From the NCBI GenBank assembly GCA_002269645.1, contig NIVC01005090.1, positions 1 through 26,493 on the forward strand: a stretch of 26,493 nucleotides of DNA, written 5' to 3'. The notes under the pieces were generated by a model. That model was given only the letters and a program-made list of their open reading frames with translations, made no database searches and was not told where the DNA came from. The stretch's first letter is position 1. Every line of letters starts with the position of its first letter. Source of the stretch: Macrostomum lignano (Eukaryota). Shown here one piece after another: positions 2,140 through 26,481 of the stretch. Position numbers and translations under genes: made by a program.

Positions 2140-2988
2140 CGGCTGTCAAGCGTGTATGTCCAGCAAATTTGTTTCTGCGTTGGCGGCGTCCGGAAATGGG
2201 AAAAGAAAGAAGCAGGCGATCGGGTATTGAGCTGAGATCCCTACGGTTAAAGTGCAAAAAAGCTTTCGGCTGACGGAACTCCGCGGTGCGCTTGTGCTGG
2301 TGAACGGAAGCCATCAACTCCGTGTATTTGAGCACCGGGGGCGAGCATGAGCTGACTACAGTCTGTCTATAGGGTTTGATTCGATCGCTACTTTTTGCAG
2401 GCCTTCAAACATATGAGCAGTGAACTATTTTGATTGAATTTGGTGCGAAAGGTAAATAAAATCTAGACAAATGACCTCAAGTGACCCTTAAGGATCAGTT
2501 AGGGGAGCGGCTTCTGGGCCGCTTGTCTCAAGCGCGCATTCACAGCAGTGCTTAATTATAATCTTAAAGAATATTGCGGCATGGCGCGAACTAAGTCAAT
2601 GATTGCAGAGGGAATGGGGCTGCAGGCTAACGAGCTCTGCCTCAAGCCCGCTATTCACAGCGGGCCTCTCAGCTGCTGCAGCAAAAGTAACACGCAGACT
2701 ATAAGGAATATCATAAGAATTAGCTTTGCTCGTACCGAGGTTGGGAAAACAATGAGTGTTGAGCAGAAATTAAAAACTCCACTTAAGCATAGAGATTAAA
2801 ATGGTGAGAGAGGTTTGCCCATTGCTGCGCTGTCTAGCTTGTCCCACAGTTTTCAGTTAAGTCACTTCAGCAGATTCGAATTCTCAGCTGCGTCCACTTT
2901 GTTCTCGGCTGTTGAGATATGCTGAAATTTGAAGTTTCGACTTAATTGTTTTTCTTTTTTTCAACAGCTTTTGGTCACGAAGGGAAAG

Positions 2989-3748
2989 GGAGCCCGCAGT
3001 TGGGGTGGCTGAGGGCAATTTCAGGGACAAGATTTAGAGCGCCTATGTACGCAGAAGGGAGCCAGCAGTTGGGGTGGGTGAGGGCAATCACAGGGACGAG
3101 ATTTAAGCCGCCAATGTACTCGGGGGAAGGAAGCCAGCAGTTGGGGTGGGTGAGGGCAATCACGGGGACGAGATTTAGACCGCCAATGTACACAGGAGAC
3201 GGGAACCAGCAGTTGGGGTGGGTGAGGGCAATCACAGGGACGAGATTTAGAGCGCCAATGTACGCGGAGGAAGGAAGCCAGCAGTTGGAGTGGGTGAGGG
3301 CAATCACAGGGACGAGATTTAAACCGCCAATGTACTCGGGGGAAGGAAGCCAGCAGTTGGGGTGGGTGAGGGAAATCACAGGGACGAGATTTAGAGCGCC
3401 AATGTACGCGGAGGAAGGAAGCCAGCAGTTGGAGTGAGTGAGGGCAATCACAGGGACGAGATTTAAACCGCCAATGTACTCGGGGGAAGGAAGCCAGCAG
3501 TTGGGGTGGGTGAGGGCAATCACGGGGACGAGATTTAGACCGCCAATGTACACAGGAGACGGGAACCAGCAGTTGGGGTGGGTTGAGGGCAATCACAGGG
3601 ACGAGATTTAGAGCGCCAATGTACGCGGAGGAAGGAAGCCAGCAGTTGGGGTGGGTGAGGGCAATCACAGGGACGAGATTTAAACCGCCAATGTACGCTC
3701 GTACTCGGGGGAAGGAAGCCAGCAGTTGGGGTGGCTGAGGGCAATCAC
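2989..3748 (+). repeat. 72-bp minisatellite, ~10.5 copies, three unit variants
   Basis: Unit GGAAGCCAGCAGTTGGGGTGGGTGAGGGCAATCACAGGGACGAGATTTAAACCGCCAATGTACTCGGGGGAA and variants, in the order A B C A B A B C A B plus a partial copy. Confidence 0.97.
3694..3703. mobile_element. Probable mariner excision footprint TA-CGCTCG-TA inside a minisatellite unit
   Basis: Three sister units read ATGTACTCGG. This unit reads ATGTACGCTCGTACTCGG, i.e. the TA is duplicated around CGCTCG. Confidence 0.75.
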
Positions 3749-3815: not shown

Positions 3816-6800
3816 TCACCTGACGTGATACATGGATGTCGGGGGCAGGAAGTTGGAGCAGCTCCGCAGCAGGCGGTTGTAGTTGTCCAGAATTATATTC
3901 TCCCGATGCAGGTTGATGTCAACTTGTGGATCAAACAGATGCGAGTTGCCGTGCTGCAGTTCCCGGAACTCCTCGTACTCGTACACATTCCAATAGGGCA
4001 CGCCGCAGTTCTTCATAAGCTCCTGGCCGCCACCGCCGCCCCCGCTGCTCGCAGGAACGCCGCATGGGTTGTTTGAAGTCTGCTGCGTCTTCGGAGTCGC
4101 TGACTCGGTCTGGGTGCTCAGCTGCAGGTTCGGTGGGGGGAGGCGGTGTTGCAGAGCAGCTAAGAGTATTGTGGAGTGTACTGATAAACAGTCCAAGTGT
4201 CTTGACTACACAGCCAGCAGTACTTTGAGCTGCCCAGTCTCATTCATCATCACTGAGAGACTCACCTGCGCGTTGCTGGCTGACCAGCAGCCGGGCAGCG
4301 GGTGGCGCTTGTTGGACTGGTTGCTGCAGGACAGCGGCACCAGCAAGGCCGACAGTGACAGCGGCTGCGCTGGCTGCTTCAGCTGACCGCGGCTGCCGCG
4401 GCTCCGCCTTGATTGGCTGCGGGCCGCAGCCCCTGTCAGGCGAGCGGCATTTTAGGGTGCGCGATTTTGAATTTGTGTCCATGAAAGAGTTGTGCGTACA
4501 TTTCTACTACGAGCGTATTAGTAGATAAACAAATATTTGCAGTAGGTTTTGAGCACCTCCTTGCACTGACTCCTGCTGACAAGGATAATTTACACAGGCA
4601 CGTACTTATTACACAGGCTTACTCAAGGTGTACAGCGGCTTTCTAATTGTCAGGCATGTTGTACTCTGCCTGTGTCTCGGGGGTTGGCCCGAATTTGCTG
4701 GAATCGCACGACAAACCTCGGCGGCCAACTTTTGTGCACACGTCCCAAATGAAGTTCAGGCAAGCAACACGGGAAAAGCATAAAGTAGTTGAGCCAAAAT
4801 TATTCTTATAAAAACCTAAGGTTGGCATGCAGACTTTCTGTGTCTTAAGCGCTGCTTCATGAGGAGGGAAAGCGAGTTGATGACGCGCGTCTTTTTTTGA
4901 CGAATGTACCTGTTTGAAAAGTTCGAGAATTCTATAACTTCCACGAGGTGGCCGCTTGTGAAGCTTCTGGTGAAGAAAGTCTGGAAGCCTCAGAACAGAC
5001 GATTCTAAAAATAAACATTTGACCCGATTATATTTTGGTTTCATCGTGTTTCTTGTCCCCTCTCTTCATTTCTCCGATTTTGCAGCACCCCAAGCGCAGA
5101 ATCGCTCTTCCTTACCTGAAGCAAACTCGACCCGCCTCCCGCCGCCGCCCCCGCCGGCGCCGTCAGTCCCAGCTGTGCGCTCCGAGCGCGCGGCAAAGTG
5201 CGAACTGCGCTGGTCCTTCTCACTGGCCGGCTGCGAGGTGAGATGTGAGGGGGGTGAGAGTGAGGGTTGCGATGTGAGGGGCGTGGGTGTAGGATGAGGT
5301 GCGCGGGGTGAGGGTTGCAGGGTGAGGGGTGAGAGAGGGCGGGGTGAGGGTGCGGTTGAGAGAGGGCGGGTGAGGGTGCGGAGTGAGGGGTGCGGGGAGG
5401 GGGCGGGGTGAGGAGTGAGGGGTGCAGAGTGAGGGGTGCGGAGTGAGGGGTGCAGAGTGAGGGGTGCGGAGTGAGGGGTGCAGAGTGAGGGGTGCAGAGT
5501 GAAGAGTGCGGAGTGAGGGGTGCGGCGTGAGGGGTGCAGAGTGAGAGGTGCAGAGTGAGGGGTGCGGCGTGAGGGGTGCAGAGTGAGAGGTGCAGAGTGA
5601 GGGGTGCGGAGTGAGGGGTGCGGATTGAGGGGTGCAGAGTGAGGGGTGCGGAGTGAGGGGTGCGGAGTGAGGGGTGCAGAGTGAGGGGTGCGGAGTGAGG
5701 GGTGCGGAGTGAGGGGTGCGGAGTGAGGGGTCCGGTTGCTACCCAACCTCCAGTTCCCGAGTCGCTACCCCAACCCCAATCTCCAAAGCCGCTAGCCCAA
5801 CCCCAATCTCCAAAGCCGCTAGCCCAACCCCAATCTCCAAAGCCGCTAGCCCAACCCCAATCTCCAAAGCCGCTAGCCCAACCCCAATCTTTAAATCCGC
5901 TAGCCCAACCCCAATCTCCAAAGCCGCTAGCCCAACCCCAATCTCCAAAGCCGCTAGCCCATCTCTCATCCTCCCAGAGTCGCACCAGCTGGCTGTCTCC
6001 GCAGTAGTCCTGCAGGTGGAGGTCCGTGGCGTTGCAGTTTCTCTGTACGCTCGGCCCGCTGAGGCAGAAGCGGGACTGGGAAGCCAGCGGACAGGCGAAG
6101 GCGGGCTGCATGTTGGGCTGCTGCTGACTGAGGAGCTTGCTGACTGCGGTGAGGAGATCGGCCTTTGGAGAGCAGGGCTTGCGGCTGAGACTGAAATAAT
6201 CTTAAAGACTTTTGAGGAATGAGACTCAGAGTATGAGGCATGAGAATCAGAGTGTGTGAGGCATCAGAATCAGAGTGTGAAGCATGAGAAGCAGAGAGTG
6301 TGAGGGATAAGAGAGTGTGAGGCATGAGAATCAGAGAGTGTGAGGCATGAGAATCGGAGAGTGTGAGGCATGAGAATCGGAGAGTGTGAGGCATGAGAAT
6401 CAGAGAGTGTGAGGGAAATGAGAGTGTGAGGCATGAGAATCAGAGAGTGTGAGGCATGAGAATCGGAGAGTGTGAGGCATGAGAATCGGAGAGTGTGAGG
6501 CATGAGAATCAGAGAGTATGAGGCATGAGAATCAGAGAGTATGAGGCATGAGAATCAGAAGCAGTTAAACATGAGAATCCGAGTTACAGATAGGCATGTA
6601 TGAGAATCGGAGAGTGAGACATGAGAACATCTGTGTTACAGATGAGACTGTGGGGCAGCGACTGAGATGTGAGCCAGTAAGGTGGTGCAAAAATCAATTA
6701 TAAAATACCGAATTTCGGCAAAAACAGCAGCGACGATGACTCACACACTTCAGATGCCGAATGCTGATCCTCAAAGTGAGCTCCCGCGGGCAAATTCTCA

Positions 6801-7042: not shown

Positions 7043-7136
7043 CCCACTGCCTTCGCCGGGAAAATCACAGAGGAAAATGCAAATCCAGTTTGAACGGGAG
7101 CCTTGAAATCTGACCGCCAGCAAATCGAATTTGGTT

Positions 7137-8215
7137 ACGGTTTAGGTTAGGATTTAGGTTAGGGTTTTCGGTTAGGACTTAGGTTTGTTTTTTTGGTTAC
7201 TTAGGTTTGGGTTTTAGGTTAGAATTTAGGATAGGTTTTAGGTTAGACTTATGTATGAATTTTAGGCTAGGATTTAGGTTAGGTTAGGATTATGGTTAGG
7301 ATATAGGTTAGGGTTTTAGGTTAGGATTTAGGTTAGCGTTTTAGGTTAGGATTTAGGTTAGGGTTTTTGGTTAGGATTTAGGTTAGCGTTTTAGGTTAGG
7401 ATTTAGGTTAGGGTTTTTGGTTAGGATTTAGGTTAGGGTTTTAGGTTAGGATTTAGGTTAGGGTTTTAGGTTAGGATTTAGGTTAGGGTTTTAGGTTAGG
7501 ATTTAGGTTAGGGTTTTAGGTTAGGATTTAGGTTAGGGTTTTTGGTTAGGATTTAGGTTAGGGTTTTTGGTTAGGATTTAGGTTAGGGTTTTTGGTTAGG
7601 ATTTAGGTTAGGGTTTTAGGTTAGGATTTAGCTTTGGGTTTTTGGTTAGGATTTAGGTTAGGCTTTTTGGTTAGGATTTAGGTTAGGGTTTAAGGTTAGG
7701 ATTTAGGTTAGGGTTTTTGGTTAGGATTTAGGTTAGGGTTTTAGGTTAGGATTTAGGTTAGGGTTTATGGTTAGGATTTAGGTTAGGGTTTTTGGTTAGG
7801 ATTTAGGTTAGGGTTTTTGGTTAGGATTTAGGTTAGGGTTTTAGGTTAGGATTTAGGTTAGGGTTTTAGGTTAGGATTTAGCTTTGGGTTTTTGGTTAGG
7901 ATTTAGGTTAGGCTTTTTGGTTAGGATTTAGGTTAGGGTTTAAGGTTAGGATTTAGGTTAGGGTTTTTGGTTAGGATTTAGGTTAGGGTTTTAGGTTAGG
8001 ATTTAGGTTAGGGTTTATGGTTAGGATTTAGGTTAGGGTTTTTGGTTAGGATTTAGGTTAGGGTTTTTGGTTAGGATTTAGGTTAGGGTTTTAGGTTAGG
8101 ATTTAGGTTAGGGTTTTAGGTTAGGATTTAGCTTTGGTTTTTTGGTTAGGATTTAGGTTAGGCTTTTTGGTTAGGATTTAGGTTAGGGTTTAAGGTTAGG
8201 ATTTAGGTTAGGGTT
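7137..8215 (+). repeat. Interstitial telomere-like satellite: 25-bp unit GGTTAGGATTTAGGTTAGGGTTTT(A/T) with a 250-bp higher-order repeat
   Basis: Diagnostic variants recur every 250 bp: GCTTTGG at 7631/7881/8131, TAAGG at 7691/7941/8191, GGGTTTATGG at 7761/8011. Confidence 0.97.
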
Positions 8216-8971
8216 TGAGTTGACAGTCAATGTGTGGCAGTCAAATGTCGCGGACCTGTCAGCTGAGACGAGAACACTCGCTATCAAAAAGTGCATCTGA
8301 CAGATTCTGTAACCCTGCTGTCAGCTCATATAGAAATTTGCATTTTACCTAAATTAAAGCTGACAGATGTGCAACTATGGACAGCTGAAGTGGAAGGATG
8401 CACTCTTGATTTTCTTCGAAAACTTCCGAAAACTCAAGCTGTACATTCAAAGCGGCCTACTAGAATTCTGCCAATATTTGCAAGTGTAACGTCCTGTGTT
8501 GTTAAGTAGTCCTTGGCCTGGAACACGCGTGAGTTCACAGGCGAAGTCCTGGCAATGACCAGCTGACAGCCAGTGGAGCTCGTCACGGGTCGCTTTTGAG
8601 CGCGCATGCAGAGGCCGGCACCCGATTGACATGCCGGCAAACAACTGGAAACAGAAGATCCAAGCCATTGCTCTGCAGGCCATGCAGCCGCAGCAGGCGC
8701 TCTGAGCACTGAGATGGAATTTTGTATTTTAAAGTCGTCCTTTAGTGCCCCCGTTCAGTCTTACAAATAAATGAGCAGTGTTGGGGATTACTTCATTGGT
8801 AAACTAAATACGTGTATGAGCATTTTGGTAGGCAGGTAAGCTAAGTGGGTGACTGCAAGCCCTACTGTCTGTAAAACTCAGCATTGCACGGACTGAGCTG
8901 GAGTTGGTTCAAGATGGGCGAGAAAGCTTCAGTCTCTCGAGGGCTTCAGCAAGCCCTGCAGGCAGCAGTCT

Positions 8972-9856
8972 CTACATCATGTGCGTATCACCGTCTGAGC
9001 CGTCAGCAGAGGCGGCGCCAGCGTTCTCGGAGTCGCTGCTGCTGCCCACGCGGTCAGAGAAAGAGATGCCGTCGTCAGAATAGTCGTCGTCGTGATGGTT
9101 GTTCAGCTGGTAGCCGTTGTCGCCAGCCGGAGGAAAATCGTGTCCGAGCTTTCGGCCAGCGGCTGAAGAGCCCGGCGTTGCGCGCCTCGCGTCGAACGGA
9201 CCGCCGCGAAGTCGCTGCGGCTGCTGCCTCGCCGGGAAGCTCCTGGCGGGAGCGCCGCCGGGAAACTGCAGACTGAACTCCGCGTCCTCCGCCTCTACCG
9301 AGTTGCCGCCGCGGTCCTGCCGCACGCTGGGGCGCACAACCAGCGAGCCGTTCTCGGCGATCCAGGAATCGAGCTGCAGGACGAGTCGCAGCTCGCTCGG
9401 CTCCGTGACGACACGCCGCCCACTGCCCGCCAGGTTGCTGGCGTTGGTGGCCACCGGCTGCGGCTCAAGCGAGCGCTGAAGCGTCTGAAGCTTTTCCCGC
9501 TTTTGCTGCGGCTGCTGCTGCTGTTGCTGTTGTTCCTGCTGCTGCTGCGGCGGCTGCTGAAGCTGCTGGCAGTTCTTCATGTACATTGCAATCTGGTTGA
9601 AGAGCTGCTGCACTTCCTGCTGATGCTGCTGCTGCTGCTGCTGCTCGTGCTTGTGGTGTCTTTCCGCTTTTTGTGTTTTCCTCTTTCGCTGTTGCTGCTG
9701 CCCGCCAGCCTTGCCGCTGGCTGCTCCCGCTGTCACCGCAGGTGCGGGGCTGGGCTCTTGCTCTTTTATCTTGTTAATGACCTTCTCGAACTGCGCTGCC
9801 AGCTGAGCAGCCGTTTGAAAGAGCTGCTGCTCCGTGCTGTCGCCGCTTTCTGCCAT
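8972..9856 (-). CDS. Hypothetical Gln-rich, largely low-complexity protein (294 aa), single coding exon
   Basis: Intact GC-rich ORF with polyQ tracts, a basic RKRK patch and an acidic tail. A 3' splice acceptor TTTTATTCTAG lies 15 nt upstream of the ATG. Confidence 0.7.
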   Translation of the reverse strand: MAESGDSTEQQLFQTAAQLAAQFEKVINKIKEQEPSPAPAVTAGAASGKAGGQQQQRKRKTQKAERHHKHEQQQQQQHQQEVQQLFNQIAMYMKNCQQLQQPPQQQQEQQQQQQQPQQKREKLQTLQRSLEPQPVATNASNLAGSGRRVVTEPSELRLVLQLDSWIAENGSLVVRPSVRQDRGGNSVEAEDAEFSLQFPGGAPARSFPARQQPQRLRGGPFDARRATPGSSAAGRKLGHDFPPAGDNGYQLNNHHDDDYSDDGISFSDRVGSSSDSENAGAASADGSDGDTHMM

Positions 9857-11617: not shown

Positions 11618-12374
11618 CGAGGCCAAAAAGTATCGAGAATTGCTGTCTAACTCTGAAAATACGAGCTTTTACTAAAATTAATCGATGTCTTCTTGCAGCT
11701 CAGCTTCTCAGCTTTTATAGGAAGCAGTCTTGTGTCGGAGAGTTTTGGTTTTAATGATTTTTTAATGATTTTTCTAAATAGCTGTCATACTGCTATGAGT
11801 ATGTCACAAAATGAACAATGAGCAACTAATCAACATCAATTTTCCGGTGAAACTCGGCAAGAAGCTATCGGAATGCCTCCAGCTGCTTCACGAGGTGTAT
11901 AGAGAAGATGCTAAGTCTCAGGCAAGGGTGTATTAGTGGCACAAGCGATTCCAGGATGGATAGGAGAGCGTCAAAGATGGGGCCAAAGTTCCTCACTGAC
12001 GGTCAGAAAAAACTGCAATTAAACATCGAGACATTGAGACAGTTTTTGGCCAAAAGATAGGTCGCAGAGTTGAGCCACCCACCTTATTCACCAGATATAG
12101 CGCTGTGTGATTCCTGGCTCTTTAACAAGGTGAAGCAGGTCCTCAAAGGATCCAGATTTCAAAACTAGGATGCCATCAAGGAGAGTGTGACAAGGGTGCT
12201 GAGGGGCGTCATGAAGGAGGGCTTCCAGGGCTGCATCAGGAGCTGGCACTAGCGATTGAGGCGATGGGTTGAAAGTGGCCGCAATTAATTTGAAGGCTGT
12301 AGTTGACTAAATTTGCATAATTTGTTCTGAAATTTTTTGTAGCTAAATTCTCGTTCCATTTTGGCCGGACCTCA
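11618..12374 (+). mobile_element. Internally deleted, decayed mariner element (irritans/Hsmar2-like CGAGG termini), ~757 bp
   Basis: Left end TA|CGAGG-CCAAAAAGTATCGAGAATT. The right TIR reverse-complements to TGAGGTCCGGCCAAAATGGAACGAGAATT. Transposase remnants: MNNEQLININFPVKLGKK...ARVY*WHKRFQDG*ESVKD (HTH, 11811-11980), PKFLTDGQK (linker) and LSHPPYSPDIALCDSWLF (YSPDL motif). Confidence 0.93.
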
Positions 12375-12693: not shown

Positions 12694-15600
12694 TTAACCG
12701 AAGTAGCCGTCTTTAGTTGACTCGGCCTGTCGTTTCTCGTCCGACTGCGCGAGCTCGACACTGGCGCCAGCTTGTCCAAGACCGAGCTTGGCGCTAGATT
12801 CTTGCTTACTCGAGCGCTCTTTGCTGTCGCCGTCTTTAGTTGACTCGGCCTGTCGTTGCTCGTCCGACTGCGCGAGCTCGACACTGGCGCCAGCTTGTCC
12901 AAGACCGAGCTTGGCGCTAGATTCTTGCTTACTCGAGCGCTCTTTGCTGTCGCCGTCTTTAGTTGACTCGGCCTGTCGTTTCTCGTCCGACTGCGCGAGC
13001 TCGACACTGGCGCCAGCTTGTCCAAGACCGAGCTTGGCGCTAGATTCTTGCTTACTCGAGCGCTCTTTGCTGTCGCCGTCTTTAGTTGACTCGGCCTGTC
13101 GTTTCTCGTCCGACTGCGCGAGCTCGACACTGGCGCCAGCTTGTCCAAGACCGAGCTTGGCGCTAGATTCTTGCTTACTCGAGCGCTCTTTGCTGTCGCC
13201 GTCTTTAGTTGACTCGGCCTGTCGTTTCTCGTCCGACTGCGCGAGCTCGACACTGGTGCCAGCTTGTTCGAATTGGAGTCCTGCGCTTACGCATTTTCTT
13301 TCAGTTTTATTGTGATTTGGGTTTTTGTGTGTAGTTTGATTTTCTGTTTTAAAGGCAAAACTGGTTTTTGATTCGTCCTTAGATAGGTGTATTCCTTGTC
13401 TTGAGGTGGACTTTCTTTTTGTTAGAGCTCCTTCTTTGGTTTCTTTTTCCTTTTTGTATATCCCGATTTGCTTGGTTTGTTCGCCTCCGCCGGCCTCGAC
13501 TTCGTATTGTCCGTGGCCTAGGGTTAACGCAACTTCTTGTTCATTGGTTCTTGCTGCTATTTTATGTTTTCCCTTTTTTACTTTGGCTTCCGTTCCTATG
13601 GATCCGTGCGTGATGCCTAATTGAGTGTCGTTGCGTTGTACCGATAAACTGAAGTCATCATCTGTTGTTTTAACTTTTAGCTGATCCTGCTTTTTTTTAA
13701 TCTGATGCCATCTCCAGACAACTCCACTTTGGTGTCCTTTGATGCGTTAGGCTTCCTCGGTTTTTTTCCTTGCTGTGTGTATTTTTTTGGCATGGAGGAA
13801 TGATTCATATTGTTTTGCTTATTAGCAGTTGATAATGTTTTCGAGAGAGTTCTCTTGGCTTGATCTACGGCTTGGCTTGTCATGTCTCCTATGCTCTTTC
13901 TTAAATAATCCTCTAGTATAGCACTGACTACTTCGCTGGTTTGCGACCGCATTTGCTGCCCGACTTTGCTTGTCAGTTGGCTGAGTTGCTCCACATTTTT
14001 CATATTCTTTTCCTTTAGCTTGAGATTAGGGTCGTACTTGATTTCCCAATCGTCGCTTCCGTCAATTAAAAAACAATCTATATTTTTTACAATGCTGCCA
14101 ACGACAGTTCTCAAGTTCTCAGCCTGCACTCCGATGGCTGCAGCATCCACCGCTACGGCTGCCAGCCTGAGGAAAACTAGGAGCCCTTTAAAGTGTTCTG
14201 CTAATTCAGAGTTTAAATTGCTCAGATATGACTTTATTGTATCCATGACCTTTTCCATCGCTTCTGCATCGTTCAGAACTTTGTGTGCTGCCTCTTCCGT
14301 GGCTTCTTTAAGTGCCTTCAATACATTGATTTGCAGTTCCGGAGTAAGCATGGAGAAATCTAATACATTCATTTTTTCCGTCGCTTGATTTTTCTGCACG
14401 CACATGGGAGCTGCTATTCGAACAACAATGTCGTACAGCCTTCCTCGCTGGGCTTCTTCGTTGCACTTTCCCTCGATATCAATTTCAACATTCTTCTTTA
14501 ACTTAGAAATTAAACTGTCAATGAGCCGTCTTTGAGCATCAGTTACAGCAAAGTCTGCTAAAAACTTAAACACGGGATTGTCTACTATACCTTTGAGCAC
14601 TTTTACAGTATTTTCTCCAACCAACTTTGTGACCAAAGATCCAGCTTTGGAATAATGTTTACTTCCAACTGAACTCATATTTTTCGCCACCGCTCCGAAC
14701 TTTGTCGATGATTTTAAGTACCCAATAACTTTACTAAAGCCGAAAGTAAGTAGGGATAAGCCAATGTTTAGAGCCTTGCTTTTCAACCAAGACGTAGAAT
14801 CAAATTCTCCTTTAAGTAAACCCATGGTACCGGCCAATATGTCACTGAAGCCTTCAAAGACTAAGTTTACACCACCAAAAGAAAACATGCAGCCAATGGC
14901 GATCTCGATTAAACCTAAAATTATTACCGCGATCGCGAATCGATACTGGGGTTTTTTCATCACACTGAATAGCCTCACGTGACCCAATAAGTAGAGAGAC
15001 CTCAGCTCATCAAGTGTAATTCTGTCTGGGTCTTTCTCGATGTCCTTTATACAAGTGCTAATAGCGACGATTTGGCCATCTTTTAATTCTTCAAGTTTTT
15101 TTAACTTTGTTCGATTCCAGCTTTGTACTTTAGGATAATATCAATCCTAGTAGTACATTGGCCGGATAGTGCACTTTTATCAGACTTTTTATCCAATTTG
15201 AATGCTTGATCGGATGTAACCTCTTGATCAGCCTGATCCACTTGATCTGTTTGATCGGATGTAACCTCTTGATCAGCTTGATCCACTTGATCTGTTTGAT
15301 CCGATGTAACCTCTTGATCAGCTTGATCCACTTGATCAGCTTGATCCACTTGATCTGTTTCATCCGCTTTTAATCTTGCTCCAGAAAAAAACCGAGTCCA
15401 CAAGGAGTGGGCTAGCCACGTTTCCTTAATTCTTGTTTTGGCTTCCTGCAAGTCGTTTTTGACATCTTCAATGCCGCTATCACCTTTCATTATCTTCGCA
15501 TACGCTCTATTGTAGTAGGCTATTGAAGACCAGGCGCAATTCATTGCAATAGCTTTAGTATATAAATCAATTGCTTTTTGGAAATCCTCATGTCGTAAAT

Positions 15601-18600
15601 ATTTGTCCGCAAGTTTTAGAGTTTGAAACGGACTCATTAAACAATCTGATTCAATATTTTTTGTGGCGTCCTTGAAAGTTTCCTTGACTTCTCTAACATA
15701 CTTGTCTGTGTTTGGTTTGCTGAAGTCGGCAGTGTGGCACAAAATTGTCTTTAGATGCATTCCCCAGATTTCTTTCAGACAGTTCAATTTGAGCTTTAGG
15801 TCTATATCATCCTTATTTGCCTGGCGGTACTTCGTTAATGAGCGACTGAAGCGACGAAACAGGCTTTCCTCGAATTCTACTTCAGGCATAGAAAATTCCG
15901 TATGATTTCGCAGCTCTTGTAAACTGGCCTCCTGCCTCACTTGCTTCATCTCCTCTACCGAGTCGCAGTCAGCAAAACAAGCGCTAAGACCCTCCTGGCT
16001 TAGAATCAATGTTGCAGAACCCCGCTGACCCTTGCGTCCACTGCGACCACACACTTGCTCCTCGACTCGCTGATTCAAGGGGAGAAATGTGACAAGTACG
16101 TGCAGACCTCCAGCTGCCTCTGCTTCATCGTTTACTTTCACGTCCGTGCCTCTGCCTGCCAAATTCGTGGCCACAATCACATCTCCTGGACCAACAATCA
16201 GCTCAGACTTTGTATCTTCGTTCCTGATGTACCTTTTAGGCGTAACCCCGTGACATCGGCGAGTTACCTCGTTGAGAACGAGATCAGCACTGTTTATGTC
16301 CTCACAAACAATCAGAGTTGGCCGGTGCCTTTCCTTCTTTACTAGCTGGCAAAGCTTTGAGATGCACTCAGATTTGGTTTCGGTGACAATGCCCGGGTTC
16401 TCTACTAGCCGGCGTTCCCTGAACGGAGGAATATAGTTTAGCTGTACTTTGTAGGTTTTGCGCATGAACTCCTTCTCGTGCTCCTCCCCGAGAGTCCCAG
16501 AAACGCCGAACACCGCGGTGCCATACCGACGGAAAAAAGATAAATTTGATAAAAAGTTTGTCTCTAAACCAAGAGGTCTCATTTGTAGACGATGCTTCAG
16601 CTGCAGGAACTGCTGCAGTCCATCGCTCCATCTCATGTTTTCTTGAACCACACCTGTGTGCTTGAAGTCCACAGGCACAGCATCTCCGTCCTGCAAGAGG
16701 TAGTCGCGTCCAGGCTGCAGAACTCCTGCGGTGAGAGCACTGTTGATCCAGACGTCAAGCATATCGTCGATGAACCCTTTCAGGTGTTTTGGCATCGGCA
16801 GTTGCTTTTCCTTGCTAGTTACTTCCGTTTTAGAGTCGTCAGTTGAATCCTTTAAGGATGTGCTGTAATTAATTTGGGATTGAACATCCTCTCTTTTTTT
16901 CGAAATGAAGTCCTCAATATTGGCGAACAGCAATCTGCAGACACCGCCTTGGTTCACGAGAAGATGCGTGGAACAGTCTTCTGAATGCTCCAGTGGTTCT
17001 ATTTCCGCATTTCTGTAGGTGTAGATGTTGCACTGGGAAACTGGAGCAAGGAATCTGCGGCAGTGGTTAGAATTTCTCTTACTCTGCCGATATCGAATTG
17101 AGATAAATCAACGGGATCTACAGTCTGATTCAAGAAGTCCTTCTTTTCCTCTGAGTTTATCAGTTCTTTCTGAAGTAGCGTTTCAATTAACTCATTGAAT
17201 TCCTCATCGGACGTTAGTTCTTTAAGGAAGTAGAGAAATGTCATTGCCTGCTCTGCAGCCATTTCACCTCCATGCACGGTGTTTAGAACATGACAACCGA
17301 ATGTGGCTCTGAAAATCGTCGGAAAAACTGGGTCCAGCATTTTCATGTCTCCCACATCCTGAGAAAGATACGTTAGCTGCACTCCCTGGTCGAGCAGCAG
17401 TGAATCGACCTCATCCACAATAACTGCGTCGAAGCTTCTTGTGCCACGAATTTCCTTAAACTGGAACTCGTGCCGCAAAACGTCACCTGCAAATGAAGAC
17501 ACCGTGCCATACACTATTTTGGACTCATAACACTCTTTTGGTTTTTTATGATTAATGTTGCAGCTAACGGTAACTTTGCATTCTTTATAAAAATCATGCC
17601 ATTCTTGGCAGTCTCTTTCAGCCAGAACTTCAGAGGGTGCAACGACGTCAACTGACGTCCTCCCGAGAAGCAGAAGTCCGACGGCGGTCATTGCCACAAT
17701 GCACGATTTTCCTTCGCCAGTCAGAATCTGCAAAATTTGTCCGAATTTCTTGCTAGCAGAGCTTTTGAGCAAGGCAGCAGCACTGAGAAGCTGTGTGTTC
17801 CTCGGAAGATATCCTTTACATTTTCTCACTGCCTTTGACAGATCAATCAAAATTTTGTGCAATGGTGGTTCCTTTCCACGCTCCCATAGTTTGATTTTGC
17901 TAAGCTTTTCGGCGATAGTTTTTTTGCTTTGCCAAATCCGGACAAATCAAAATATTTCGCGGTTTTACTGACGACATCTTCAAGCTTGAAAAGCTGATCC
18001 TCTTCAAATCCTCCTGATTCCTTAAGTTCAGCTAGAAGTTCGCCGAGAGTCCTCTGTGCTGCCTGATCCTTTTCAAGTCGCTCAATGGTGGCCTTTGAAA
18101 TAGTCTCGCTGGAATCCAGAAGACCTTTTAAATCGCAGCGGCTCAAAATCATCATCTGGACGACCTGTCTTACTTGATCAGGTGTCGAGTCACTAGAGTG
18201 AATGAGCTCCATTAGCTTGAGCGTGCTTGCAGAATCCCAGTGCTGCATTGACAGAATGAGCTCAACCACACATTCGGTGTCCGATTTCTTATCCAGATAG
18301 TCAGCGATGCCAGCAGTTTTCAGCATTGCTGTCACGACGGATCGAAGTCTCTTCAAGTCGGTGTCTGCTTTCTGGACAGGCCAGAGTCGAGTAATATCTT
18401 CAGCCACTAAGAGTAGCTTCAGCAGAATTTTTATGACAGGATTAGTCTCATCCTGATTGTTTGCCATTAGCAGCTTATCCAGATGTTGTATGGCACAATT
18501 TGTGTCACGGAACTGATGAAGAAGTTCATCCAACTCGTCTTCGTTCAAAAGGTCTTCAGCGGATTTTTCTTTAAAAAAAAGCAAAACCAGCAAGCCATAA

Positions 18601-20161
18601 TACACCATGTCGATTTCTGTTTTCGGAAAGCAAAATTCTATGAGAACCTTGTTTGCAGCGTCTAGCACTTGGCCAGCCGACTCTTCATCTAGAAGCTTAA
18701 GAAGCGACAAGTGTGTCGCCATTTGATTCTCTTTATTGGGCTGAGGAATTCGTGACTTCCAATGACTACGAAAATGATTCAGGAATTGCGATCTTGAAAC
18801 GGCTTCTACAGTTCTCAAAGCATTTTGACCACTCGCATTCTGACTTGCTTCTTTGAGACGGGTAAAAACATCTCCGACAGCATATTCAATGCTTTTATCT
18901 ATTTGGCTCCTGATATCTGCAACAGTAGCATCGGAAACTCCAAGGCTTGCATAGTCTTTTGCACACTTGCCGCGCACATGCTGTATCGAGACTCTCAAGC
19001 CTTTGAACAATCTCTGCATTTCTTTTGCTCTATGGTTTTCCCTTGCTGTTGCCACTTGCCGTCCAAATTTCTCTGTTTTCTGTAGGTTCTCAGACGCTTG
19101 CTGATTTCTCCTTATCTTTGCTCGCTGCTCTTCAATTCTTCTGGCGATATCGGCCTCCTTTCAGCTAGTTCAGCTTCGAACTCTCTTCTTCCTTTTTCAA
19201 GCTCCTCCTGCTGCGACTGCAGTCTCTTCTTCATCTCCAAGCTATGCTCTTCCATCTCAATCTGCTTCTTCTGCATCTCGCTCTGAAAGCGACCTTTCCT
19301 TTCTTTAAACTGCGCTTGCAGACGAGCTCTGTGTTGATCAGCTTCCGCATTGAGGCTGTTAAACCTTGCACTTGTCTCTGACGTAATCCGCTCCTTTTGG
19401 TGCCGAAAGCTTTCCAGTCTTTCCATTCGAATCTTTTCCACCTCTTTTTTTTCCTCCAGAAAATCCTGTTGGCCTTTAGTTTTCCAGTCTGTCTTTTGCT
19501 TCTGCAGTTGAGAGAAAAGCTTTTCTCGATTCTTATTCTGCTGGGAAGAACTCTCAGCCTGCCTGCCTAACCTGTCTTTTTGCATCTCCTGGCACCTTCT
19601 TTTGAACTTATCTTCTCTGCGGCTGAATGCGTTTAATGCCCTGCTTCTTTCTGAATTCCACGCCTCCCATTTTTTTCTGTTTTCTTCTAGGATCCTATCC
19701 TGCTGATCCTTCTGCTCTTTTATCTTTCTTTCGTCAAAGAGTGTCCGTTCTCTGTCACTCTGCTTCAGCTGCTCTCGAGCTGTTTGCATTCTTTGCTCCC
19801 GCTCTCTGCGTTTCCTGTCAGCAAACATAGACTTCGTTTCATATTTATATTCTGCCTCCTGTTTGCCGTCATAGCTCAGATGAATAAATCCCTCTGCCGG
19901 TGAATCCAGCTTCCATTCTTTGTTTCTGATCCCATTGCACCAAGACTGCATGTTTGGGTTTTGAATGGTCTCGTGTTTACCGTGCATTCCGTGTTTGAAG
20001 TAAATGTTAACCGGTAGACCTTCGTAGTCATAATGAACTGATCTACCAGATGGCAAATTGATGAGCTCGGATCCAGCACCAACTCCTATCACCTTGTACT
20101 TCGCTGCCACGCTCCAGTCCTCTTCTGTGTCGTTACAGAGCTTGCTCCCGGTGTTGCCCAT
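12694..20161 (-). CDS. Giant eukaryotic SecA-like DEAD ATPase (~2490 aa after repairing five 1-nt homopolymer deletions). Parts: myristoylation motif, coiled coil, SecA NBD1/NBD2, TPR, hydrophobic hairpin, C-terminal repeats
   Basis: SecA-family motifs appear in order: QILTGEGKS (Walker A), APSEVLAERD, YGTVSSFAGDVLR, VIVDEVDSLLLD (Walker B), WSDGLQQFLQLKH, GVSGTLG, IVATNLAGRGTD, GGLHVL...EEQVCGRSGRKGQRGS. Frames join at ~19155, 17919-25, 17035-37, 15106-08 and 13691-98. Stop TAA at 12696-12694. Confidence 0.85.
12707..13264 (-). repeat. 123-bp coding tandem repeat (41 aa, QAGASVELAQSDEKRQAESTKDGDSKERSSKQESSAKLGLG), ~4.5 copies
   Basis: Units start at 12707, 12830, 12953, 13076 and 13199 and are nearly identical. 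They are in frame with the repaired SecA-like C-terminus. Confidence 0.93.
15206..15360 (-). repeat. 45-bp coding repeat (DQTDQVDQADQEVTS) built from 9-bp DQx subunits
   Basis: About 3 copies, seen in both DNA and translation, between the TPR and the hydrophobic segment. Confidence 0.9.
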
Positions 20162-21245: not shown

Positions 21246-24200
21246 ATGAACGACGACAGGCACGACTTAAAGCACCATTTTCGCTTTCTAGTCAAAAACA
21301 AAAGATCCACAAGGCAGAATGGAAGCCTGGAAAGTGTGCTCGTCTTTGATTTGGAAGGACCTCCTTCTTTTTCGTCCAGTAGATGGACAGAAGCGAGCAA
21401 GAAGCAAAAGACAAACCACGCGGAAGTCGAAAAATGGTTTGTCAAGTTTAGGAGGAGCCATGAGGAGGTAAGACCACTTTTGAAGAGATTTTGATTTACA
21501 TCATTTTCAAATTCAAGGTGCCGCCTGTACTTTAGGTCAAAAGCTCACTGTAATCAGCAAGCTCACTAGATGCAGAACAATAATTTTAGTCAATTATTTT
21601 TCTGAAATCTATAGCACACATACATACAGACAACTCATTTTTTGTATATAGGATCCTGTGATGCCAGTCGGCTTATTCATACCTTTCCTTAAAGCTTGAG
21701 GCTAGAGGCTAGCTAGCCTAGATGCATAAGGCTTGTATTGTACGAGCGTACTTTACTCTCTCGTGTTGCACTGGCGCAATTGGTGGTGGTTCGCGTTGCA
21801 AATCGTCCTGAACAAGTGCAAGCAGTGTATAGCAGGCTCCTAGCTGCAGGCCGGTCCAAGGACAGCGGGGGAGGCAAGAGTCGCTCATTCCTCATCTTAT
21901 TAATGAAAAAACGAATTATCTTCCATTTTTTCTCCATTAAGGTTCCAAGTGAATTTTCAAACAAAACTACTGAGGAACAGTTAGGTGCGACTCAAGTGCA
22001 ATACGGTGGCCAGACATGCTTTTTGGTCTATTGTCTACACACGTCATTCCTCTCTTCCCGGGAAATAGGAGTTTATGCGCCATTTTTTAGTTCTCGGCTC
22101 ACGGTGCGCCGTTGCAAATGAAGAGTCCTTAGCTATCCATACTAGAAAGTATCTGTACCAAGAATATGTTTTCGTTCCCTGCCATCTTCCACCTTCACCA
22201 AAATAGACATGAGATCGCGCTAGATGGCTTGAGTAACCAAATACTGAGATGCGATTCTATCATTCTCAAACCGCTGTGAGCGGACAATAAGTTAGTTTGG
22301 GACTACTTCGAACAGTGAGCAGTTTTCTCTTTGCTTGCGATTCTCCTGATCGCCCTGTGTGCTGCAATTCCGCCGAGCGTTTCAACTTGCATTGTTTTAT
22401 AGAACGGGCGCTCTATAGCTCCCAGTATATGATAAGATGACGCGGTTGTGTTCAATCAAAATTCGTCAATGCAGACCTTGAGTTCTTTGTGTTTTTTACT
22501 CCCCATACCCACTCGCTCCAGATCAGATCTACACGTGGGATGTAGAAGAAGGGTGTTTGATTTGCGTTTTAGTTTGTAAACAGTGAGTTCGTGCTGCATT
22601 TAACCGTCTCTCTATACCCTTGTAGATTAATGTGTAGTGCGTATGCTGTGTCATCTCAATTCAGAATCGTCCTATTTCCTTTGCTACTCCTTTCAGAGGA
22701 AGGAACAATGGAGCTGCAATGTCGAAGTAAATAAAAAAAGAAGAGAAGTGTCTTTGGCAGTATTAGGCATGACAATCTCGGATAATATCAAAATTAGTTC
22801 GACAAAGATCACGGTGGCCGACTGCAAGCAGGAATTTAACCGATTGGTCTTGGAGTCCACAAAGGGAATTAATATCTCATCTAGATGCATGCGAGGGTCC
22901 AAAATAAAACTTCTTTCTTCAGAAGTTGTGGTGGCAGAAAGCTCAGTTGTTCAGTGCTCGCAGTTGCTATGCGAATCAACGATCCGGGAGGTGTCATCCA
23001 GCCTGATTGTGTTTGGCAGCATCTTGCCGCTTCCCTGTTCAACTGAGGAAGCTGATGGCAGCCTTTCCATTCGAGTTAATGGAAATATTGTAGTAAAAAT
23101 GGATGCAAAAATCGGATATTCGGACCGGCATAAAAAGGCCAAAGAAGTAAGTTTGATCAGTACTGATGGCATAACAAATGTTGGAGTCGTATTTGCTGAA
23201 CACAAGATAGAAATCTCGGCAAAGCAGATTCGCTCTCCAGTATCGAGCAAGGAGTCTGCAGCTCGTGTGTCAAGATACCTCAGTGACGCTGGCAAGCAAA
23301 GCAAGGCTGAAAGGAAAGCGAGAGACGCCGACAAGCAACTGATCGATTCGTCCACAGGTGATTCTGCAGCAGTGAAAAAGCTGCTATTTTCTGGGGCTGA
23401 TCCTACATTCAAAGACAAAAAAGGTGAAAGCGCCATTGCGAAGCTCAGAAAGGCGATTGCTGATCTGGGAACTGCGCCGAATCCACCGGGTGTCGCTGAA
23501 AAGAATAAACTCAATAGGAACGCGATACTCCTGAAGTGGGAGGCAAAAAGTAAGGGAAAATACCAGTCACAGAGTATCTGCTGTCTTGTTAGTGAGGATG
23601 TTGCCAACCTCAGCCAGTTTCTGGGTGCAAAAGTTCATCTTGAAATTGGTGGGGATGCGTTTGTCGAAGAAAGGTCTGTATGGAAAAGTGGGTCAATCAG
23701 CGGTTGGTGCCGCGGTAGGCTCAATGTCCAAGGAGAAGTCAAGATAGAAGAGCTGAATAAATTCGAGGTTGGAAAATGCAGAGTCCAAGCAGGGGCAGAA
23801 TTGTGGTTAGTGAATGGCGGTTCATTAAGAGTAGTAGGTAGTCTTGAAAACATTGGATGCATATACAACAGCTTCAAGAAGTTCTCAATGGATATTGAAA
23901 GTTTCTCACAGAGTATAAATGCGGCTGCTTATTCTGAGAAGGAGAACAAAGCTGAGCTTCAAATTACCACAAGGAGACCAAGTGAGTCCGTGTTTGGCAG
24001 GCTGGGTGGCTACCGAGTCACTGTCTGCGCATTTGCTCAGCTTGCGCTTCAGGCTGAAGTTGAGGCCATGGAGTCTTTGGTAGGTGTCATTTATAGTCCA
24101 GCTGGTCATATTTCGCTGCAAGGAAGTATTAAAATAATTGAAGGACCACTTGTTGTACATTCCTGGCTTCGAACCTGTGGCTTTGGACCTGACGTAGAGT

Positions 24201-26481
24201 TAAACTGCAGCATGGAGTGCGCGGGCATTGTCATTCCTGCTGCAACAGTGAACTTTGGTCCTAAGAGCCAGTTGCTGTGTCCTCCACAGTGTAGTCAAGA
24301 ATATTGCGCGAATAGCATCGAAATCGTGTTAAACAAAGCTCAAACACAAAGCGGATCAGTATGGGAGTTTTTTACTCGCGAATTGAGCATCTTCATCGGG
24401 ACTAAATTCACTCACCAAGGCAGCCTGAAGCTTTGCAAGAAAGGTGAAACAGGTCGTGAGACAAGAGAAGAGCATGGAGCGTCTGTATACATAAGGGGAA
24501 ACCGATTTGTTAACAAAGGAATGATAAGTGGAATGAAGGCCTTATGCATTGATTTAGACAGTGATTGTGAGCTAGACAGAAACCTTGAAGTACATGACTC
24601 CATTTCAGTTTTGACAAGAAAGCATCTTACAATATCGTCGAATACTAAATTGAAGTCCGCTAACGGAAGCTTGGTGATCAGTGCACATTTCATAGCTAAT
24701 TTTGGTGCTGTTCACAGCCACACGGATTTAATCATCGAGTCCGGAGACATTGATAATTCAGCTGGGAGCATTGCATCAGACCATGGAATCGTCTTTATTG
24801 CCTGGTTAGGGCCACAGGAAAGCTGCTACCTCGAGGGCCATGTACAAGCTGGTTCGCAGCTCGTGCACAGCAGTAAATTCTAATATGCTGCATATCCACG
24901 CCAAATCTCACAGCCAGCCATTGCAACTGCAAATTCCAATGAACGGCGCCAGCTTCCAATGCTTGTCAGGGTCCGTAGCACTTCATTCAAAAGTGTGCTC
25001 GCCTGAGCAAACTTTTCTTCACTTAAGAGCTTCTGAATCAATTGAACTGCAGCGAAGCGTCACTTGCGACACACTCCTCGTTCAGCCGTCCCCGTCTGCT
25101 TCGGAGATAAAGCTGACTGTGTCGAAACTGGAGAAAATAACGGTGGGCTGTTTGTTAATCAGCCACGTAAACGACCGGCAGAACCGAAATGCTAAAGCAA
25201 TTGTAATTGAAGGTCAGCAAGGGTCAAAATTAAAATGCAACAAATTTATGGGGTCTGAAATCAGTCTTGAGCTGAAAATGGCCGCTGAAATGGATATGCC
25301 AAGCCAGATTATGGTGCAGAAGCTGTCGATTTCACAGGACTTGACCGTTCAAAGCCAGCAAAGCGTGTGCGGAGAATTTCTGGTAAACTGTGAGACTGAA
25401 CTGGAGATTAGTGGCAATGCGGAGTTCGTTGGGGCAAGCAGCTGCCTTGTGAGAGCTCGTAGACTTTTACTCTGTGATGCGGCCGTTCTTCGCCTCTTGC
25501 GTCTGAGACACGTGACAATTCTGGCAAAGGAAGTCGTGACTGAAGGCAGTTTTTTTCGCTTCTTTGGAAGATGAAGACCGTGCCGCGATAGTGGTACACG
25601 CGGATGAATTTTATTGTCGTGGATTGATTCAGTTCGGAGGTGAAAGCTCGACAAATCTCATTTTGCATGTCAACGAATGCACAATAAGCGGTCGCATCGT
25701 TCACGGCAATCAGCCATCGCTGATGCTGATCGAATTCTTCAAAACTGCCACGGTTCTGCCGGAGAGCGAAATTGATTTAGGGAAACTTCTGCTAATTGGG
25801 GGATGCGAAGGTACATGCAATTTTAAGTCTGCAACCCTTTCAGTGTCTGAGTTAATGGCTATAAAATCTGTGCGCCGGTTGTCCTGGGAGACCAGCAAAG
25901 TCAAGCTGAACCAGGCACGCTTCATTGTAAAAAACGTTGAGCAGGTCGCTCTTAAAAAAACTGAAATCATTTGCCCTCAGGGCGTTGTACTCGACGAATC
26001 GCTAGTGGGAAGCTATGAAGTGAGCACTGCTAAAGTAAAAATCTGTGCTCAGGAGTTCACCCTGGAAACTGGTTCCGAGATTCGCAACATTGATACACTT
26101 GAAATTCACGCCTGGAAAAACGCCAGTTTTGAACTAGGCAGCAAAGTACAATTTTGCGGTAACTTTAATCTAAGAAGCAGATTCATTTACTTTCAGGCGT
26201 CCGTACACGATACGGGTGGCATTGATTGTCAAGCGGAAAGTATTGTTGTGACCGGGAGGGTGGATTGCTTTAGATCGCTGTCCGTTGCTGCATCTCAGCT
26301 GCTGCACAATCAGGGAACGTTGAGTGCAAAAGATGTCAGACTCGATGCTACCGCTCAGATGCACATGTGCTCGAGCAGCGAGGATTCAGTTCTACCAGCG
26401 ATAATTTCAGCAAAAAGCTCATTGCAGCTGAACTGCTACATCATGTTGTCTATATATGCCGAATACACAGCCCCACAATAG
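21246..26481 (+). CDS. Filamentous-haemagglutinin/CdiA-like beta-helix repeat protein with an ankyrin-like insert. Exons 21246-21467 and 22697-26481, two frameshifts, ~1334 aa, may continue beyond the window
   Basis: Phase-0 donor GAG|GTAAGA (21468) matches phase-0 acceptor CCTTTCAG|AGG (22696). Repeated motifs: ITNVGVVFAEHKIEISAKQI, FVNKGMISG, IANFGAVHSHTDLIIESGDIDNSAGSIAS, LHNQGTLSAKDVRLDA. Ankyrin-like DSAAVKKLLFSGADPTFKDKKGESAI. Frames join at the AAA near 24874-76 and the T7 at 25550-56. Confidence 0.7.
21741..21750. mobile_element. Probable mariner excision footprint TACGAGCGTA (intronic)
   Basis: Exact match to the recurring 10-mer, inside predicted intron 21468-22696. Confidence 0.6.

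Follow-up and report, generated by a model that had tools for sequence, protein, structure and literature searches.

How does an animal genome come to carry a gene for a SecA-type ATPase, and what kind of protein would such a gene encode? SecA is the ATPase of the Sec translocase of bacteria and plastids; animals have Sec61 and, to our knowledge, no SecA-dependent pathway. Thousands of animal genes are nevertheless labelled 'SecA-like' though animals are not supposed to use SecA. A gene of this kind lies on the minus strand (20161..12694) of contig NIVC01005090.1 of Macrostomum lignano, of which positions 1–26,493 were analysed as a whole (the window, 26,493 nucleotides). With a probability of roughly 75% this locus is a divergent member of the eukaryotic long-form family of SecA-like ATPases that is broken as assembled, a reading that draws together the observed domain content, family membership, collinearity with relatives and breaks in the reading frame. 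The family itself is already annotated in databases; the locus adds to it a divergent copy that may be dead.

A SecA-type motor outside the Sec pathway

What identifies the motor? Read across the frame changes described below, the central part of the gene contains the full SecA motif series that an original prediction, made from the letters alone, had claimed. Nucleotide-binding domain 1 (NBD1), the DEAD motor, is encoded at 17359..17838 (minus strand, as are all features of the gene) and is matched by Pfam SecA_DEAD (E-value 4e-25) and by alignments to SecA structures in the PDB; its Walker A motif TGEGKS (17721-17704) and its DEVD box (17415-17404) are intact. NBD2 follows at 15974..16363 (Pfam P-loop_SecA, 1.6e-10; Helicase_C, 5e-5) and contains the likewise intact motifs ATNLAGRGTD (16171-16142) and GRSGRKG (16048-16028). 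Of the preprotein cross-linking domain (PPXD), the C-terminal half is recognized at 16604..16750 by Pfam SecA_PP_bind (4.7e-6, model positions 61-109 of 110, scoring above the 23.5-bit cut-off) and by PDB alignment, and the confidence of the AlphaFold model is low in this part. In phmmer searches against the PDB, SecA chains are found at 5e-37, with alignments that cover NBD1 as well as PPXD plus NBD2. A model of the 841-residue core, computed with AlphaFold from 25 sequences, reached a predicted local distance difference test (pLDDT) value of 71 and a predicted template modelling score of 0.64, and in a Foldseek search with this model SecA structures come first (E 3e-24, about 880 aligned columns), with the helicases DinG, UvrB and XPD far behind. 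Of the checks that had been proposed with the prediction, HMMER bears out SecA_DEAD and SecA_PP_bind, and AlphaFold the SecA-type fold.

Could the gene then encode a canonical organellar or bacterial SecA that drives the SecYEG pathway? With canonical SecA and SecA2 (PDB 1tf5, 3dl8, 6sxh) it shares the superfamily 2 DEAD motor including Walker A, the DEVD box and motifs V (TNxAGRGTD) and VI (GRSGRxG), the insertion of the PPXD into NBD1 and the long helix behind NBD2, and both the completeness of the NBD1-PPXD-NBD2 series and the best fold match would fit such an identity. However, neither SecA_SW (at E<=0.01) nor SEC-C is matched by Pfam, so that by sequence no signature of the wing/scaffold domains (with the two-helix finger that enters SecY) or of the zinc-binding SEC-C motif is found, and the tail of the window gene is an unrelated low-complexity repeat; the PDB sequence alignments find nothing past the end of NBD2. 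As to the scaffold, the AlphaFold model does have a 47-residue helix behind NBD2 and aligns with SecA over about 880 columns. Furthermore, an insert of about 150 residues, absent from SecA in the PDB alignment, separates NBD1 from the PPXD, and some 800 residues before the motor and 850 after it are unrelated to SecA, about 1650 extra residues in all, including a myristoylation-type start and a hydrophobic domain of its own. The absence of a SecA-dependent pathway from animals speaks in the same direction. In neighbour-joining trees (472 columns, 100 bootstraps, simple distances) canonical SecA controls stand apart in 100/100 bootstraps, and in this phylogenetic check, set beforehand as a refutation test, the gene is not nested within canonical bacterial SecA. 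Phylogeny and domain content together rule out canonical SecA, whose probability is practically nil: the gene does not encode a Sec-pathway translocase.

Directly behind NBD2 the gene encodes a helical region (15383..15958) that consists of a 47-residue helix followed by helical repeats (helices 645-691 and 698-836 of the AlphaFold model). It contains the family motif YTKAIAMNCAWSSIAYYNRAYA at 15562-15497, detected by a hidden Markov model (HMM) of the family tail at 2e-13, and the underlying pattern YTKAI..W..IAxYNRA is kept across the whole family. The tetratricopeptide repeat (TPR) that had been predicted shrinks on inspection to one TPR-like hairpin, which does lie in the family-conserved motif but stays below threshold (Pfam TPR_BSK1_C, 20 bits versus a cut-off of 42). 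According to the family HMM, this helical block is matched by giant proteins of intracellular bacteria and not by canonical SecA: the bacterial giants align in three blocks including the one after NBD2, canonical SecA in two and with far lower scores.

Relatives in animals and in intracellular bacteria

Who are the closest relatives of this protein? Searches with the core retrieved more than 2700 homologues, the best 120 of which are almost all fish proteins named 'protein translocase subunit SecA-like' with 1000-1200 residues and 29-36% identity. These vertebrate short forms (about 1000-1200 residues, for example P0078 of zebrafish and H2ZV24 of Latimeria) have the same motor and the motif YTKAI..W..IAxYNRA, and their genes are single-exon and arranged in tandem; they are, however, only 30-36% identical to the window protein overall and have neither its N-terminal domain nor its charged helix. 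At one zebrafish locus (GCA_049306965.1, CM111185.1, 2753280-2776897; L001) two single-exon tandem SecA-like paralogues lie directly downstream of a septin/AIG1 (GIMAP-type) GTPase gene. Closer in architecture are long forms of eukaryotes, found in gar (XP_069047858, 2783 residues), coelacanth (LOC135359053, 2014), bichir (LOC120534854, 1793), Dallia (KAJ7987040, 1914), the frog Discoglossus pictus (KAM4651976, 2091, a tandem cluster of six), the sponge Geodia barretti (CAI8044684, 2065) and on eukaryotic contigs in ENA (among them P0145, 2490). Their order of parts is that of the window gene, from the MG start and the N-domain through the motor and the TPR-like block to the hydrophobic domain and a helical linker, at 27-52% identity by segment, whereas the region encoded by the second open piece, the long charged helix and the repeat tail are the window's own. 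In the neighbour-joining trees the window protein groups with the eukaryotic sequences in 95/100 bootstraps, as its assignment to a eukaryotic SecA-like family had implied. A clade of bony fishes, mostly short forms, leaves it out (93/100); it is basal in 68/100 and still basal after the addition of 64 long forms.

Bacterial and archaeal genomes were scanned with the family alignment as well. The best matches lie between E 1e-74 and 1e-50 and cover query residues of about 8-820, and in the same scan ordinary SecA was matched to residue 633 only, at about 1e-22. Nearly all of the best prokaryotic matches belong to obligate intracellular bacteria, namely Legionellales, Coxiellaceae, Francisellaceae and Parachlamydiales, with further ones in Rickettsia, Tisiphia, Wolbachia, Midichloriaceae, Bandiella and Holosporaceae. 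These relatives are open frames of 2000-4500 residues or more and are 28-40% identical to the window protein (E down to 1e-77). Like it, the 2000-4500-residue giants (loci L002-L052) combine an embedded motor with both the helical block and the hydrophobic domain; unlike it, they fall on the other side of the split that has 95% eukaryotic support, and their flanking regions are unrelated to those of the window protein. Pfam found only SecA-type domains in three bacterial giants and four animal long forms, apart from one weak OTU match.

Is the sequence itself bacterial, either as a contaminant or as a recent nuclear insertion from an intracellular symbiont with a giant SecA-like protein? In their similarity to the window protein, giants of Rickettsiales, Legionellales and Chlamydiae are roughly on a par with the fish proteins, the giant architecture and the hydrophobic domain are common to both, and frame-shifts would suit a decaying insert. 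Such an origin is nonetheless very improbable given the eukaryotic grouping in 95/100 bootstraps and an MG start with an N-domain that match the frog protein and other animal long forms. The start context, too, is eukaryotic (Kozak-type), with A at -3 and G at +4 behind an acceptor-like ttgcag at 20170-20165 and without a Shine-Dalgarno sequence. The flanks consist of minisatellites and TTAGGG-like arrays and contain no bacterial genes, and the G+C content of the gene (41-49%) overlaps that of the flanks, of which the upstream one is more variable (37-63%). The locus is thus best read as a member of the eukaryotic long-form family, and the family can be described more sharply than before: its motor is accompanied by a helical block specific to the family and by a hydrophobic domain of about 200 residues; animal members have in addition a start of the myristoylation type and, in many cases, an OTU-like peptidase. 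That giant proteins of Rickettsiales, Legionellales and Chlamydiae contain this cassette as well points to an exchange of genes between animals and their intracellular bacteria.

Several further sequences came up beside these groups. A SecA-like gene on a 24-kb contig in a metagenome-assembled genome (MAG) of Stappiaceae (OZ219990.1; L031) falls inside the eukaryotic clade together with ENA contigs of eukaryotes (79% bootstrap), which may mean that DNA of a host was wrongly binned with the bacterial MAG. Two virus-labelled IMG/VR contigs of 25 and 44 kb (L085, L086) carry close relatives (E 2e-67, 35% identity, query residues 23-716), in agreement with the SecA domain reported in the eukaryotic association module of phage WO (Bordenstein 2016, PMC5062602). 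More distant SecA-type genes were found on giant-virus MAG contigs (L087, L088, L090) and on a further IMG/VR contig (L089).

The hydrophobic domain and the ends of the protein

What else belongs to the family cassette? Behind the motor and its helical block the window gene encodes a hydrophobic, glycine-rich helical domain of about 200 residues (14466..15053, residues 30-225 of the fifth open piece) with a Kyte-Doolittle peak of 2.63 and the motifs FAIAVIILGLIEIAIGCMF (14939-14883) and EGFSD...GEFDSTSW (14855-14787). The window's own copy scores 175.6 bits against the family profile over these residues 30-225. An exhaustive HMMER search that covered 1.84 billion representatives recovered 89 representative proteins at E<=1e-3, mostly of 1500-4900 residues and with the domain just after the SecA-like motor. 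In a jackhmmer search the domain lies downstream of the SecA module in 37/43 bacterial open reading frames (ORFs), 4 of the 43 being canonical SecA controls, and a profile search detected it in only 1/120 fish proteins. AlphaFold modelled the region at pLDDT 65, with three helices at pLDDT 75-92.

The N-terminus that the original prediction had singled out is borne out by the relatives. The ATG at 20161, preceded by ...ctttgcagcATGG, opens the sequence MGNTGSK, and its first six codons (20144..20161) fit the N-myristoylation consensus G-{EDRKHPFYW}-x2-[STAGCN]-{P}. This pattern starts 27/115 relatives with the hydrophobic domain versus 0/120 short fish forms, which together with the hydrophobic domain behind the motor lends comparative support to membrane anchoring. 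The start is followed by an N-domain of about 112 non-charged residues (19826..20161) of the type 'NxT(P/E)(Y/E)xW', which has no match in Pfam or NCBIfam. Pairwise BLASTP aligns it to the N-terminus of the frog protein KAM4651976 (MGNSMT...; 26% identity, E 7e-5), in which, as in the window, the domain precedes a helix rich in E and R. Among long forms two types of N-domain occur behind the MG start, one rich in cysteine and the other, seen in frog and Dallia, of the 'NxTPYxW' type, which MGNTGSKLCNDTEEDWSV of the window fits. The frog match and the conservation of MG support the start codon and the idea of membrane anchoring. In Discoglossus pictus (CM050169.1; L083), MG start and N-domain are spread over three small 5' exons with introns of about 2 kb, and some 1815 residues lie on one exon. 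Judged by this exon layout, the N-domain looks like an exon-shuffled addition that in the window is contiguous with the rest.

The next part is, as had been predicted, a long charged stretch: about 290 residues (18981..19849), probably a coiled coil or a single alpha-helix, with 45-72% E/K/R/Q/D and 0-3% G/P in 40-residue windows, which spans the first frame change. Between it and the motor lies a helical region of about 350 residues in the second piece (17947..18980), for which homologue searches detected no relative; its last 70 residues or so weakly resemble, in collinear position, the part before NBD1 of a zebrafish paralogue (E 0.045). A word-indexed search with a concatenated query of N-domain, second piece, fifth piece and the non-repeat part of the sixth piece returned nothing at E<=0.01; a later exhaustive search with the fifth piece did recover relatives.

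On the C-terminal side, the predicted repeats are present as two arrays. An acidic 15-residue repeat (DQVDQADQEVTSDQT) occurs three times at 15206..15355, between the helical block and the hydrophobic domain (Tandem Repeats Finder: period 45, 3.1 copies, 95%). After the hydrophobic domain comes a helical linker and then a lysine-rich stretch (13680..14465), to which only a few long forms show remote similarity at the corresponding place (P0162 aligns to residues 24-478 of the fifth piece, P0181 to 12-434) and with no hit in a local search. The low-complexity tail (12694..13679) comprises about 155 unique residues and then a 41-residue repeat (13267-12706, 4.6 copies, 99% identical to each other); it is closed by the TAA stop at 12696-12694, has no homologue that our searches could find and is, of all parts, the least certain to be coding. 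Around 40% of the long-form relatives (about 45) have, after hydrophobic domain and helical linker, an additional OTU-like module with an invariant GHY...NCLF as an accessory feature, and so do four bacterial giants (L002, L005, L037, L051). Its identity as OTU is weak (PDB 3by4 at E 0.01; Pfam OTU at 3.4e-4 in P0133), and only OTU peptidases match. In this module the histidine stands ahead of the cysteine in sequence.

One gene in six open pieces

How is such a protein encoded? The original prediction had assumed a single ORF of about 2490 residues, which does not exist in the assembly: the span 20161..12694 measures 7468 nucleotides (3 x 2489 + 1) and is no multiple of three, and straight translation from the ATG meets stops from codon 350 on. 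A stop-to-stop scan resolves the coding sequence into six stop-free pieces in frames 1, 0, 2, 1, 0 and 2 (20161-19115, 19160-17850, 17946-17002, 17107-15104, 15140-13680 and 13746-12697), and adjacent pieces overlap by 36-105 nucleotides without a gap. There is no in-frame stop across the roughly 2489 codons of the six pieces, and all five changes of frame are of the -1 kind expected from the loss of a single base. In the first interval (J1, 19115..19160), which contains no homopolymer of at least 4 bases, the charged run goes on in the new frame. The second (J2, 17850..17946) includes an A7 run at 17925-17919, and alignments to homologues begin at 17922 in the new frame. The third (J3, 17002..17107) falls inside the enlarged insert between NBD1 and PPXD, where the alignments of fish homologues reach 17038 in the old frame and resume from 17059-16963 in the new one. 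An A7 run at 15102 is not the site of the fourth (J4, 15104..15140), because it starts within the stop codon of the old frame. The fifth (J5, 13680..13746) contains an A8 run at 13698-13691. A DNA pattern spanning J2 had no match in metagenome contigs, and a look-up of the exact window protein found nothing.

Why should these pieces be regarded as one gene? Relatives are single ORFs: the zebrafish relative is a single exon of 3618 nucleotides for 1205 residues, and the relative on the ENA eukaryotic contig (P0145) is an uninterrupted ORF of 7473 nucleotides for 2490 residues. Collinearity with the single polypeptides of relatives holds across J2, J3 and J4, and the piece after J4 carries the domain that relatives have behind the motor within one polypeptide. 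Introns were considered as the source of the frame changes and ruled out, since the open pieces overlap by 36-105 nucleotides, coding resumes at once in the new frame and relatives are single ORFs. The whole coding sequence lies within one DNA stretch of about 7.47 kb and needs no intron; in this sense the earlier description as intronless stands, but not as one intact ORF. Alternatively, the span could consist of two or more genes or of fortuitous open frames. The second-piece region and the tail without homologues would be compatible with that, as would the stop that ends the fourth piece, which cannot be removed by altering the length of the adjacent A-run. We consider a split of this kind very unlikely in view of relatives that hold N-domain, motor and hydrophobic domain in the same order in one polypeptide, the overlap of adjacent frames without any gap and the charged helix that runs on across J1.

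What, then, caused the breaks? Homopolymer error was tried as the whole explanation and is supported only in part, runs of at least 7 bases being present in 2/5 junction intervals as against a chance expectation of about 0.5, given that the gene has ten runs of this length, and 3/5 intervals being without a homopolymer of at least 4 bases. Slippage of polymerase or ribosome on A-runs might also bypass the frame changes in vivo. Slippage on poly(A) tracts rescues frame-shifted genes in some endosymbiont bacteria, and suitable runs are present at J2 (A7) and J5 (A8). The three junctions without a long run, however, leave slippage unable to restore the whole frame, and we know of no precedent for five slippage sites in one animal gene, so that this explanation has hardly any weight.

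A far stronger competitor is real decay. According to this explanation, which we hold to be a serious if somewhat less probable option, the five frame changes are genuine, and a gene of the long-form SecA-like family has recently decayed to a pseudogene here. The three intervals without homopolymer would fit it, as would unique changes at six positions otherwise conserved in fish and bacteria, the long basal branch, the loss of the OTU-like module, the replacement of the tail by 99%-identical tandem repeats, the repeat-rich setting with telomere-like arrays and a neighbouring gene that is frame-shifted too. On the other hand, no in-frame stop is found in the approximately 2489 codons of the gene nor in the roughly 1300 codons of its neighbour, although seven indels under neutral decay should, by a rough estimate based on the ratios of indels to substitutions that are typical of vertebrates, bring a few nonsense changes with them. 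None of the ATPase motifs is damaged, and 98 of the 113 near-invariant columns of the fish proteins are kept. Furthermore, the five shifts are all of one single-base-loss type, two of them in A7 or A8 runs, and losses of the same type in such runs are typical of consensus errors of long reads. The unrelated neighbour gene has two more shifts at similar density, one of them in a T7 run, which also counts toward assembly error. Uncorrected assembly indels are consequently the explanation of the breaks to which we lean, with slightly better than even odds and a little ahead of decay. Either way, the five frame changes leave the gene as assembled unable to encode the described protein; the copy is divergent and has either been assembled wrongly or died recently, and programs for gene prediction will miss it or model it wrongly.

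Several points weigh against the reading of the locus as a long-form family member that is broken as assembled. Its closest relatives are only 30-52% identical, and the tree that places it was built by neighbour-joining on simple distances. Six altered positions that are conserved in both fish and bacteria, and the long basal branch on which it sits, would fit relaxed constraint. The uninterrupted reading frame that relatives have is absent here. The homology of the N-domain has a single pairwise E-value of 7e-5 as its sole basis, no structural match to the hydrophobic domain better than E 0.8 was found by Foldseek in the PDB, and the OTU-like module has no match in six frames of the window. 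The region of the second piece and the tail are without homologues, so that they are only putatively coding, judged by the open frame.

Possible function

What could a protein of this architecture do? Full-text literature searches returned no functional study of animal SecA-like proteins, only brief references to SecA-like domains in effectors of endosymbionts, in the module of phage WO and in giant proteins of bacteria. Effectors of Amoebophilus include SecA-like domains (Zhang 2012, PMC3482391). Giant proteins of Omnitrophota and Actinobacteria contain divergent SecA DEAD and PPXD domains next to transmembrane segments (West-Roberts 2023, bioRxiv 10.1101/2023.11.21.568195; Kaur 2021, PMC8195603), and the authors of these studies suggest that the domains may serve to export the very giant that contains them. 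By description, these giants resemble the window protein in having a motor that apparently lacks the wing/scaffold domain in a giant protein beside transmembrane segments; again by description, they are set apart by a size 10-40 times larger and by arrays of extracellular adhesins or enzymes.

The conceptual product would start with MGNTGS and an N-domain of about 110 residues, followed by a charged helix of about 290 residues, the orphan helical region and the motor; behind the motor would come the long helix with the TPR-like block, the hydrophobic domain of about 200 residues, the helical linker and the repetitive low-complexity tail. It could be imagined that such a protein is attached to a membrane from the cytosolic side by a myristoyl group and by hydrophobic helices, and uses ATP to grip a polypeptide and move it through the PPXD clamp. 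We regard this membrane-tethered, polypeptide-gripping ATPase, deduced from domain order and motifs, as a tentative and rather doubtful proposal. Handles on function that could be tested are a G2A mutant, a Walker A mutant and a deletion of the hydrophobic domain.

A role in conflict between host and microbe is suggested by context alone: in fish, tandem, fast-evolving single-exon paralogues adjoin a GIMAP-type GTPase gene; relatives are present in intracellular bacteria and on virus-labelled contigs, and many of them have an OTU-like peptidase; and SecA-like domains have been published for the phage WO module, for Amoebophilus effectors and for giant bacterial proteins beside transmembrane segments. 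A much bolder idea, to which we give little credence, is that the long forms are self-contained ATP-driven translocators, exchanged horizontally between obligate intracellular bacteria and animals, in which a myristate would tether the protein, the hydrophobic domain would serve as conduit and the motor would thread the C-terminal part across a membrane. The threaded part might be the OTU-like peptidase in many members and the unfolded repeat tail in the window gene, and the target could be, for instance, the membrane of a pathogen-containing vacuole. If true, this would constitute a SecA-type translocation system in the animal cytoplasm that is independent of Sec.

Surroundings of the gene

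What surrounds the gene in the window? Divergent from it, a second large gene (22631-26478, plus strand) runs off the end of the window. It consists of three consecutive open pieces of 750, 254 and 313 residues. The frame changes twice by +1, at 24810-24880 and, in an interval with the T7 run, at 25540-25571. Apart from one ankyrin-like repeat near residues 222-266, it showed no match in Pfam, NCBIfam, the PDB or a database of 5.8 billion proteins and no similarity to any of the loci of relatives compared here. On the other side of the SecA-like gene, telomere-like arrays of TTAGG/TTAGGG variants extend over 7129-8216 (25-bp unit, 43.6 copies) and 2012-2076 (18-bp unit, 3.6 copies), which suggests an interstitial or subtelomeric setting. 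Four minisatellite arrays lie at 14-499, 2982-3748, 5245-5987 and 6213-6559 with units of 18, 72, 14/27 and 23 bp, respectively, and the long 'ORFs' listed within them are translations of the repeats. Rfam had no match in the window. A GC-rich (62%) ORF of 294 residues on the minus strand (8972-9856) starts with MAESGDSTEQ, contains long polyglutamine runs and has no Pfam match; it may be the first exon of another gene. Just downstream of the SecA-like gene, a short ORF fragment on the minus strand (12088-12249, …LLDGILVLKSGSFEDLLHLVKEPGITQRYIW) looks like a remnant of another coding sequence, possibly of a transposon.

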